Source: Octopus bimaculoides | Lineage: Eukaryota | Assembly (NCBI RefSeq): GCF_001194135.2 | Contig: NC_069003.1 | Location: forward strand, 18,018,296 to 18,082,295 | Length of the DNA: 64,000 bases | Direction: 5' to 3' | In this document: in pieces, positions 7,857 through 12,256 of the stretch | Position numbering within the stretch: position 1 is the stretch's first letter | How the letters are laid out: every line of letters starts with the position of its first letter | Made by a program: the position numbers and the translations under genes | The notes under the pieces: generated by a model | What the model was told of the DNA's origin: nothing | Databases searched by the model: none | What the model saw: only the letters and a program-made list of their open reading frames with translations

Positions 7857-7861
7857 TTACC
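7857..7861 (-). CDS. Lam: Probable lamin last coding bases GG TAA (complete the Trp codon T|GG, then stop)
   Basis: Strong acceptor ttttattttcttcatttctttctag|GGTAAG; phase matches the 10664 donor. Confidence 0.65.
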
Positions 7862-9632
7862 CTAGAAAGAAATGAAGAAAATAAAAATTAAAAATAGTCA
7901 AGTATAAATATATTCCACATGCATTTTACAAACACGTTATGTTTGTCAGTTAAAGCAAAATAAAAAAAAAAACCCCTCACACTTACAGTAAAAAAAACTA
8001 CTAACTATTTAGAAGCCATGGTTTGAATATTTGACAGTACGAATAAAGCTGCACAATAAACTAAACTGGCACTTTGTTGGTTACGACGACGAGGGTTCCA
8101 GTTGATCTGATCAGTGGAACAGTCTGCTCGTGAAATTAACATGCAAGTGGTCAAGCACTGCATGTACATGTGTACCATTCATGTAGTTCTCAGAGAGACA
8201 CAGCGGGATACAGATTGTGACAAGACTAGCCCTTTAAATTACAGCTGAGAGGACTGGAGCAATGTGAAATAAAGGACACAACGTGCTGCCGGGAACCAAA
8301 CTCACAACCTTACAAGAGGGAGCTGAATGCCCTACTACTAAGCCACTTGCCTTCACTAACAATAAATAAACAAGACAAAAACTTGGTCTCCTGGTCATCT
8401 GCAATAGCAAAAATCATAAGGCCAACATCCCTACCTAGGAGAAGAAGACAGGGGAAAAAAGAAAAAGAAAAAAAAGCATCAATGACAATTCAAAACTAAT
8501 AAAAACTGGAAGAGGAAGGCCTTCCCTCAGGGACCTTGTACCCACAAAGAAGGCATAAGAGGGGACAACCTAAAAATAGCTGGAAGTAGTAGTATACTGA
8601 TGCAGAGTTAAAAAAGCAGGGATCCAACTGGAAAGAAGCAGAAAAAACAGTCCAGATTTGAAAACAGTAGAGAGAAGTCATTGACTGCCTATGTTCCATA
8701 AGCACTGAAATTCATAGGTAACAATGAGAAGAATCTGAAGTTTTGGGGTTGTTTTCCTTTAGGAAATTAAATACTGAAAGATAATATTTATCCCCACTTA
8801 AACATGAATGTTTCATTAGAAAAAAAAAAACTGTACTGCAGTAGATACCATGAGAGAAACTCATATAGATCTTTTTTTAACAGGGAGATAAATCCCTGCC
8901 ATCTCCAATACCAAGACTTTAGCTTTCCTTGGTCTTGTCAATAATAAGCTATATAAACAAGAGTGCATTTTGCACAAAAAGCCAATATGAGAGTTTCTCT
9001 CATGCTAACTACCATAGTATAGCTTGTTCTAACAGAACATCCATGTTTAAGTGGGGATAGATATTATTTTTCCCTTAGGGCTTATAATTTCTTGTTTTAG
9101 ACACTTTTCAAGGCAGTCAATTGGCAAAATCAGAGTAAGACAAAATGCCTCAAGCCTTGATTTCAAATCATATTGGGGTTAACTTTGCCAACCACTCTAA
9201 GGCAGTTGTCTGGGAGGAAATATCATACTGTTGGACAGGATACCTAGCAATATTCCTTTCAGGTTTTTGAGTTCAAATCCAGCTATGGCCTACTTGAATG
9301 GTAAGTAGACACTTGCCCTCACCTGACCCTTCAGGTCTGCAGTTTGAAGATATCTTTTCCTTTCCATCCACCAGTGTTGAGGGCCCTGAATACTGTCCTT
9401 CTTTTCCAGACCCCAAAGAAAAAAAAATGTGGGGTGGGGGGAAAAGAGACATCAGATTCTTTTCTCCCCATAAACTGGTTGACTGTTTTGTCTATCTTGG
9501 CTAAATATTCCACAGACATGTATAACAAAATTCACAAGTTAAATCAATATGGTGACAGTGTAAGATTGGCTCTTTGAATGACAGGTTTAATTCATTGGGA
9601 GAGGGAGGGAGAGAGAGGGAGAGGGGGGAGGG

Positions 9633-9663
<31 letters not shown>

Positions 9664-12256
9664 TGTGTGTGTGTGTGTGTGTGTGCCAATCTGGGTGCTA
9701 GACTGGTATTTAATCAACCCCCAAAAGATGAAAGGCAAGTTGACTCCAGTGAGAATTTTAACTCGGAGTACATACAACCAGAACAAATATTGCAACATGT
9801 GCCTGACATATCGCTGCTAATCTACTGCCTTGACAAACTTACAGAATATCTCATCATTATCTATCTGCAACTCATGCTGACATGGGTTGAACAGGTTGTC
9901 ATGACACAAGCCTTTTGCAATTGAGGGCCTGCTCTTATAGACTGGTGCCTGCATGTCTCATTAGAATTGAATTTTAAGGAATGTTTAATCAAAGTGAAAA
10001 GAGGCTAATAATGCAAGAACTTGTACATTACTGTTCAACCTGCTCGAAATATCTGCGAAAACTCTCTCAAATCATATACAACTGTCTTAGAAAAGAAGGC
10101 CAAATTGGATAAGGTGATTCTGCACTCTGACAGGAAAAAGAGGAATACCACAGCTCAAGACTACCTAAGTATAAACAACATATACACATACACACAATAA
10201 CTATTTATATATTTTGTATTATATTTTGTTAATGACAGTTGTAAGTCATAGGTTAGACCAGTTCAATCACTAGTTCACACTATTTGTAATGATGATGGTG
10301 ACAAAGGACCATCTGTGCAACTTGGGTGGAACAACTATCAAACATGGTATTTTGCCTTCAAAAGCACTTCTTTCCATGTCTATGTTTATATTTTTTGTCA
10401 TTACACATCAAAGAGAGAGAGAGACTCACCACCAACATGCATTTAATGAGCTGCATCTTTTGTCTACCAAATTCCATTTGTATGAAATCAGTGAACTGAA
10501 AGCTATGGCAAAAAGACTAATGGTGCAGTATACTGGGCTTAACCAGGGGCCACATGGTGGCAGCAAAGTAAAATGCTTCAAATCATACAGTCTTACCCTG
10601 CAGCAACCATTTCTTCACTATATTAACAGAACAAAGAGAAGAAAATGATATATATATACTTACAGAATATCCAGCCTTTCTTTTGAGGGGTCTACAAGTG
10701 AAAAAAACAAAACAAAATCAATTTCATTCAAGTAAAAAATCTCAAAAAAAACAAAAAACAAAAAAGAATTTAATAAAAATCTCAAAAAAAAAAAAAAAAA
10801 AAAAAGAGAAAAACACAAATCCATGTTATTAATGGTAAAATGGTAAATGAATAATGTTTAATGAGATCAACAGGATGTTGCTGAATTATAAAATATGAGT
10901 TAGCCAAAATAATGAGAAAAGACAAAGATGGTTTAAATTAAGAGATGAACAAATGATTGTTTCATGTGTTTGTGCATTATGTATCTGAGAATGGCATTAC
11001 ATTTATTCCTTCATTATGATAATTTCAACAGTACATATATTGGTTTCAAATTTTGCCACATGGCCAGAAGATTTGGAGGAGAAGCTAAGTCGATTAAATC
11101 AACCCCAGTGGTCAACTGGTACTTATTTTATCAAACACTGAAAAGATGAAAGGCAAAGTCAACCTCAGCAGAATTTAAACTTAGAATGTGAAGACAGATG
11201 AAATGCTGCTAAGCATTTTGGCTGGCGGATTAATGATTCTACCAGCTCACTACCATAAAGGATTATGTAATATTACCACATACATGTGTTCTATGTTCAT
11301 CTTGTCAAGCAAAGTCAAAACCTTTTCTGCATGTAATCACATGTAATACACAATTTATATTCATGATGTATCCAAACCATGTATTGTTGAAACAATTGTA
11401 ATGAAAGGAATAAATGTGATACCATCACCTCCAGTTTTGAATATGCTATATCATGCTCTACAACCAACAAATTCTCCCTGGAATTTCAATGTGTATGGAA
11501 TGGTTTCCTTTAATGTCCATTTCTATGCACTCTGTTAGCCAGCATTTCTGTGAGTACAAGCTGAGGAAACTACTTGGATTTCTAAATCCTCTTTAACCTG
11601 ATACATATATATCAATAGATATATATGTACATACACACACATACATATATATATATACACTGTCAAAAAGCCCTACCATATATATCCACATACAACCCCC
11701 TTAACAATGAAGCCTCTGAGACCATCCTTCAGAACATTCCTCATTAGAGATTTTTAAAATCCGGATATCAATTGAGAGAAAATTCCGCAATATATAGGGA
11801 TAAACTGTCCAATATTGTGTAAAGTAAATATAAGAAAATGGAGAAGAAATATAGTGGATACTTATTCAATTTTATTTGTACCACAATGAAAGCATATCAA
11901 ATAGTGTAATACAAATAAAATTTAAAGTAACAGAATCAACATAAGAAATAATCAAAAAAGATGCCCATAACATAATATTTTTCAAATACGTCATAGTATT
12001 AAAGTAAATCTCCCTCCACTACCTCCGTGTCCTACCTTTCCTAAAAGATTGTTTCTGTTATTTGAATATTTGGAAGTACAGTCCTCATCAATCTTACTCA
12101 TTATTTACCACCAATAAGTAAGAAATTTTGCTGGACACACAGTTGGGTTCTTTTACATCTAACACGGTTAAAATCGTGACGATCAAAAGCAATGTTCACC
12201 TAGTAGATGGATTGAAACGCGCAGGCAACATTTTTGATTATTTCTTATGTTGATTG

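Follow-up and report, generated by a model that had tools for sequence, protein, structure and literature searches.

The window analysed here, a 64,000-nucleotide stretch of the Octopus bimaculoides genome, carries on its minus strand a nuclear lamin gene whose predicted protein ends in ...KKGWIFW instead of a CaaX box, an ending that is encoded by a 28-nt microexon followed by a last exon contributing only two coding bases and a stop codon. On every defining point that can be tested in sequence, this lamin belongs to the class of CaaX-less cephalopod lamins described by Stick & Peter (Protoplasma 2022; PMC10125929). The tail, the microexon and the split Trp codon are thus already known, both from that publication and from the current RefSeq annotation, and as both the 2022 study and the annotation precede our finding, it brings nothing new to the biology. 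What it offers is a check, showing that an exon of 28 nt and a last exon with two coding bases can be reconstructed from sequence alone. The question of how a lamina is held at the inner nuclear membrane in the absence of farnesylation is nevertheless a real one, and cephalopods, with one lamin gene and no CaaX box, offer a clean natural case of it.

Structure of the lamin gene and its 3' end

The window is base for base a part of GCA_001194135.2, chromosome CM046623.1 (about 18,018,296-18,082,295). Exons 2-10 of the lamin gene were mapped from stop-free segments and splice sites; with exon 11, the microexon and the last exon, the window holds exons 2-13, with canonical GT..AG ends in all eleven introns (Table 1; a slash marks an exon boundary). 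Exon 1 was looked for within the window and not found there; it lies just beyond the window's end. The intron before exon 3 is the protostome-specific one (PMC10125929, section 9). We hold this gene structure and identity, namely exons 2-13 of a single lamin gene annotated as lamin-B1, with a GWIFW ending and no CaaX box, to be almost certainly correct, given that the sequence reading agrees with the model in RefSeq, with transcripts of orthologues and with the published class (PMC10125929).

The part of the protein encoded in the window contains a rod (Pfam PF00038 Filament, E=2.1e-42, spanning residues 5-266 of that part), a predicted nuclear localization signal (NLS), RGKKRKV, read directly from exon 7 after the rod and before the tail domain, and a tail domain (Pfam PF00932 LTD, E=3.2e-18) whose immunoglobulin (Ig) fold matches the solved structures of lamin A/C, B1 and B2 (E=3e-27 to 1e-21). 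A first-pass annotation of this DNA, made from the sequence alone, had stated that the NLS and Ig fold are kept, and both are indeed present. Judged by its domains, the gene product is a nuclear lamin, that is, a type V intermediate filament protein. The CaaX box of nuclear lamins is missing, with the protein ending ...GWIFW, and this does not expel it from the lamin family, in which some other accepted members also lack a CaaX box.

At its 3' end, exon 10 closes in phase 0 with the codons GAT AGC TCC in front of a gtgagt donor at 26168. The microexon at 10691-10664 reads ACC CCT CAA ... ATA TTC T/gtaagt and codes for TPQKKGWIF plus the first base (T) of the terminal Trp codon; the last exon, ag/GG TAA at 7861, supplies the second and third bases and the stop, and the 3' untranslated region (UTR) runs from 7857 toward lower coordinates. 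The C-terminus is ...KKGWIFW, with no CaaX box, in both isoforms of the gene. This path is the one that the first-pass annotation had proposed: the phase 0 end of exon 10, the microexon and the GG TAA at 7861 are exact in the sequence, with the annotated coding sequence (CDS) ending at 7857, and the KKGWIFW ending with its T/GG split matches both RefSeq isoform X2 and the published cephalopod tail (PMC10125929). The microexon and the 2-base terminal exon are spread across 18 kb of intron.

A chance origin of this terminal-exon reading is excluded, because the expected number of occurrences of TPQKKGWIF in a six-frame translation of the window is 2e-8, because the microexon and the last coding exon are each single-copy in the window, and because the acceptor at 7861 has a strong pyrimidine tract. 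Three AG/GG-plus-stop sites lie 3' of the microexon; pyrimidines occupy 17 of the 18 positions upstream of the one at 7861, compared to 7-8 of 18 at the other two.

The joined sequence of exons 2-10, the microexon and GG/TAA equals the last 453 residues of XP_052831985.1 (P0274), the 593-aa RefSeq lamin-B1 isoform X2 of O. bimaculoides, with no mismatch. Window positions w convert to position 66482-w of the XP_052831984.1 locus (L002), so that the annotated CDS end at L002 58625 is window position 7857. XP_052831984.1 (P0152) is the 602-aa isoform X1 from the same species, and the window exons including an alternatively spliced 27-nt exon 11, which reads ccag/GTC TAC ... CAT CTT/gtacgt, equal its last 462 residues exactly. 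Exon 10 is thus spliced to the microexon either directly (X2) or via exon 11 (X1). What the first-pass annotation had called the best splice path is therefore isoform X2 exactly, yet it is one of two annotated isoforms, and the 27-nt exon at 24012-23986 had been missed. A blind splice-score scan for exon 11 returned 94 candidates without a clear winner, the true exon coming fourth and tied in score with two others; it was recognisable only by comparison with isoform X1. Its YSRRHL core is kept in the long isoforms of Acanthosepion pharaonis (P0155, ERERITYSRRHL) and of a Logan protein with a decapodiform-type tail (P0156, ERERVSYSRRHL).

An older 626-aa O. bimaculoides model (UPI00071D1A79, P0275), found in the same protein cluster, lacks the true end and runs past the exon 11 donor into the intron, a reading that we could reproduce from the window sequence. 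Table S1 of the 2022 study lists the species (LGKD01216286, 626 aa) with 'no' under ORF complete and the remark 'gene incomplete?' (PMC10125929). A gap of 100 N at 22051-22150 lies within lamin intron 11, between exon 11 and the microexon, and we infer that the older assembly may have been broken there, putting the two terminal exons out of reach of the earlier model; such a break would explain the entry in Table S1. Our small addition is to show, from the current assembly and its annotation, that the 3' end of the O. bimaculoides gene is the one standard in cephalopods.

Homologues from other cephalopods agree with this structure. From a distant CaaX lamin (P0001, ending ...CLLM) used as the query, a HMMER search of the full library led to P0017, a protein of 592 aa that is 64% identical to the window lamin and ends ...AQQRKGWLFW, the sepiid tail of Table 3 in PMC10125929. 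It is coded by a cuttlefish-type contig of 2190 nt (L001; Logan assembly, run SRR7548197), whose alignment to window exons 2-9 is interrupted at the same boundaries, in the manner of a spliced mRNA, and which is also colinear with exon 10, the microexon and GG/TAA, ending ...AQQRKGWLFW and a stop. Between the cuttlefish 3' UTR and the window downstream of 7857 there was no similarity, and candidates for the polyadenylation site consist only of ATTAAA/AATAAA signals. A word-index protein search with a 453-aa query retrieved the annotated octopus proteins, with further matches to two isoforms from O. sinensis (599 and 590 aa) and a 590-aa protein of O. vulgaris. When a 177-aa tail-domain query was used in the same kind of search, it gave one distant match (P0001) and missed octopus proteins that are 100% identical, so its negatives are weak. 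Every cephalopod lamin homologue retrieved ends in W[IL]FW, and a Cxxx ending is found in 77 of the 120 top lamin homologues.

These features are those of the published class. CaaX lamins were absent in all 23 of the 23 cephalopods examined, whose consensus tail, TPsQqkkgWlFW followed by the stop, is coded by two exons, with the terminal Trp always split and the last exon consisting of two bases plus the stop; Octopodiformes additionally carry the alternative exon 11 (PMC10125929). The tail of the window lamin is identical at 10 of 10 positions to the published tail of O. vulgaris, O. sinensis and O. maya, it has the same two-exon ending with a split Trp codon, and its 27-nt exon 11 gives rise to the 602- and 593-aa isoforms. 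Whether such a tail had been described in molluscs, which the first-pass annotation had left open, is answered by those 23 cephalopod species (PMC10125929).

Table 1. Positions of the lamin exons and of other features, in window coordinates
Feature	Position	Strand	Remarks
Lamin exon 1, 419 nt	64481-64063 (window-equivalent)	-	outside the window, 63 bp past its end
Lamin exon 2	42578..42710	-	coil 1B; first base is the last base of a Lys codon; tttag/G...ATT/gtgagt; L001 aligns 42710-42581
Lamin exon 3	40527..40676	-	coil 1B; splice sites, L001 alignment
Lamin exon 4	35845..36012	-	splice sites, L001 alignment
Lamin exon 5	34665..34790	-	splice sites, L001 alignment
Lamin exon 6	33428..33648	-	coil 2 / rod end; ends in phase 2; L001 alignment
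Lamin exon 7	32231..32447	-	predicted NLS RGKKRKV and start of the lamin tail (Ig-fold) domain; L001 alignment
Lamin exon 8	30996..31100	-	Ig fold; L001 alignment
Lamin exon 9	29713..29829	-	Ig fold; L001 alignment
Lamin exon 10	26168..26260	-	ends in phase 0, donor gtgagt; 3' end reads ...GATAGCTCC/gtgagt
Alternatively spliced exon 11, 27 nt	23986..24012	-	VYQYSRRHL; in isoform X1, skipped in X2
Penultimate microexon, 28 nt	10664..10691	-	ttgtag/ACCCCTCAAAAGAAAGGCTGGATATTCT/gtaagt
Last exon, coding part	7857..7861	-	tttctttctag/GGTAA; GG is Trp bases 2-3, TAA the stop
SINE-like repeat	10990-11260; other copies near 48205-48373, 34080-34629, 31134-31291		copy with the CLIK-stop string lies ~450 bp upstream of the microexon
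Second repeat family	3170-3712, 14256-14434, 16818-16996, 25365-25540, 37517-37661, 45683-45825, 46116-46261, others		
Retroelement fragment (apparent)	12622-13698	-	lamin intron 11; open reading frame with PHD finger, E=8e-7
Retroelement fragment (apparent)	46972-47445	+	intron 1; sub-threshold zf-RVT, E=3e-4, 22 bits against a cut-off of 27.5
Near-perfect palindrome	14724-14875		73-nt arms, 95% complementary, 6 nt apart
Near-perfect palindrome	49261-49500		120-nt arms, 94% complementary, abutting
C2H2 zinc-finger open reading frame	1215-1581	+	Pfam zf-C2H2 E=7e-8; cut by gap 1582-1825; downstream of the lamin gene

The search for a CaaX exon

The minus strand of positions 1-26167 was scanned for Cys-x-x-x-stop strings with in-frame AG acceptors, and no credible phase-0 CaaX exon was found on it, bearing out what the first-pass annotation had reported by eye for the region downstream of 26168. 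This strand contains seven C-a-a-X-stop strings, compared to 7 +/- 2.8 in shuffled sequence. Read-through of the exon 10 donor would give a lamin-C-like ending, VSTQSDFGN followed by a stop; no model or published transcript backs this reading, and we rejected it.

We consider it extremely unlikely that a conventional CaaX exon is hidden in a gap, such as the one at 22051-22150, or outside the window, and that GWIFW is the ending of a minor isoform or a misprediction. There would be room for such an exon, as intron 11 holds 120 N and the window has seven gaps, and the scan did turn up a CLIK-stop string at 11137 (cag/TGTTTGATAAAATAA, TGT TTG ATA AAA TAA) in phase 0 behind a strong acceptor. We rejected this string as a CaaX relic, however, because it lies inside a multi-copy repeat resembling a short interspersed nuclear element (SINE), to which at least five other sizeable stretches of the window match (147-191 nt, 73-81% identity); in addition, K is poorly suited to the X position. 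GWIFW is the ending of both RefSeq isoforms, with the CDS end at 7857, CaaX-like strings occur at the chance rate, and no CaaX variant was present in the transcriptomes of 23 cephalopods (PMC10125929), all of which argue against a hidden exon.

How the tail might act

An octopus lamin of this structure would keep the B-type rod, NLS and Ig fold but could not be farnesylated. In the mechanism that we favour, the invariant KK-G-W-I-F-W-COOH end would take the place of the farnesyl-methyl-cysteine and anchor the protein weakly and reversibly where the membrane meets the nucleoplasm: both Trp and the Phe would settle in the interface of the bilayer, the two Lys would be drawn to acidic lipids, and filament polymerisation would add avidity. 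Stick & Peter had hypothesized that Trp/Phe-rich tails without acidic residues replace the farnesyl group for membrane association, and stated that experimental proof was needed (PMC10125929). The membrane anchor suggested in the first-pass annotation is the same hypothesis, and from the composition of the tail it is a plausible one. That the basic-aromatic tail is a direct lipid anchor appears to us about evenly balanced between right and wrong. By the Wimley-White interfacial scale, GWIFW comes to a total free energy of about -5.1 kcal/mol, which is of the order of a single lipid modification.

Several considerations weigh against a direct anchor. For all of the last ten residues the interfacial sum comes to only about -2 kcal/mol, with Lys, Gln and Pro unfavourable, and a direct anchor would accordingly be weak and rely on the attraction of Lys to acidic lipids and on filament avidity. 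Lamins of the lamin C type, which also lack a CaaX box, reach the lamina without a membrane anchor of their own, so that an anchor is not logically required. Furthermore, the authors of the 2022 study report no experimental proof that cephalopod lamin tails bind membranes (PMC10125929), and no follow-up work on this point was found in the collection of papers searched.

The modest net free energy of the last ten residues would also suit a tail that does not insert into lipid but docks onto a protein that resides in the inner nuclear membrane or the lamina, making attachment indirect (partner binding was also named in the first-pass annotation), and the spacing and identity of W-x-F-W, near-invariant at the C-terminus across about 23 species, fit a recognition motif equally well. 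We nevertheless regard docking as rather unlikely, since no partner is known and since annelids, non-bdelloid rotifers and plant NMCP1 converge on the composition of the tail (aromatic, basic, no acidic residues) and not on its sequence, which argues for a physicochemical over a sequence-specific role. Still less probable, in our judgement, is a tail without any membrane role, in which case the lamin would reach the lamina via its rod, Ig fold and partners, like mature lamin A/C, and the tail would be kept for assembly control, turnover or constraints at the mRNA level on the two-exon ending. CaaX-less lamins that work without their own anchor do exist (vertebrate lamin C and Drosophila LamC); those lamins, however, are expressed alongside a CaaX lamin by which they are carried to the membrane, and cephalopods have no CaaX lamin (PMC10125929). 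In addition, two Trp, among the rarest of residues, have been kept from Nautilus to octopus, which implies selection on the peptide.

Returning to the direct anchor, we would extend it only tentatively to the propositions that exon 11, with its YSRRHL core, tunes the strength of anchoring or the choice of partner, and that the same solution may recur outside Lophotrochozoa.

Basic-aromatic endings were also seen in gene models from other lineages. Hymenopteran proteins predicted as 'lamin-C isoform X2' end ...HHQQ(K/R)RY(L/F)YPY, and Nasonia ends ...RRTYWFNPF; the hymenopteran isoforms with such basic-aromatic tails instead of a CaaX box are P0245, P0246, P0252, P0255, P0258-P0261, P0263 and P0269. 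For the bee Calliopsis, models X2 and X1 share 587 identical residues and then diverge into KRYLYPY and GDPQGEGNCRIM (X1 ending ...GNCRIM), respectively; as far as computational gene models can indicate, this divergence suggests alternative last exons that pair a CaaX box with a basic-aromatic tail outside Lophotrochozoa. A gene model of the bivalve Solemya velum (P0165) ends ...HRRKWFFF. Neither the hymenopteran tails nor that of Solemya are mentioned in PMC10125929, and a search for them in the collected papers found nothing.

Other features of the window and comparison with known lamins

Apart from the lamin exons, the window contains several repeats and coding fragments (Table 1). A second repeat family of about 140-190 bp occurs in both orientations at 69-83% identity (27 BLAST hits, including the self-match of the query) and translates into pseudo-open reading frames that recur across the list of open reading frames for the window. 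Adjoining the frame with the PHD finger in lamin intron 11, the frame at 12622-12825 reads like the C-terminus of a reverse transcriptase and has no Pfam match. Each of the two near-perfect palindromes gives the same open reading frame on both strands; they could be elements of the foldback or miniature inverted-repeat transposable element (MITE) type, or assembly artefacts. The C2H2 zinc-finger frame may be a gene or a fragment borne by a transposon.

Compared to the B-type and invertebrate lamins that carry a CaaX box (human lamin B1, Drosophila Dm0 and those of other molluscs), the octopus lamin has the same rod, NLS and Ig fold, the same archetypal intron positions up to exon 10, and likewise a short, separately coded C-terminus. 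It differs only at that C-terminus, which lacks the CaaX box and with it farnesylation, endoproteolysis and carboxymethylation, and which two exons encode jointly. A CaaX box is also missing from vertebrate lamin C and Drosophila LamC; unlike the cephalopod protein, which is the only lamin, these two occur together with CaaX lamins, by which they are brought to the membrane, and neither carries a conserved aromatic tail.

The convergent aromatic tails cited by Stick & Peter are those of annelids, non-bdelloid rotifers and plant NMCP1 (PMC10125929). They resemble the octopus tail in being basic, rich in Trp and Phe, free of acidic residues and situated at the very end of a lamina protein, and examples are among the homologues retrieved here, but they are of independent origin and have other sequences, and NMCPs are not intermediate filament proteins; Terebelliform annelids, moreover, still make a CaaX isoform by alternative splicing. 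With the CaaX-less lamins of other cephalopods, in contrast, the octopus lamin shares the tail itself, the split Trp codon, exon 11 and the lack of a CaaX exon, and only the species differs (PMC10125929).

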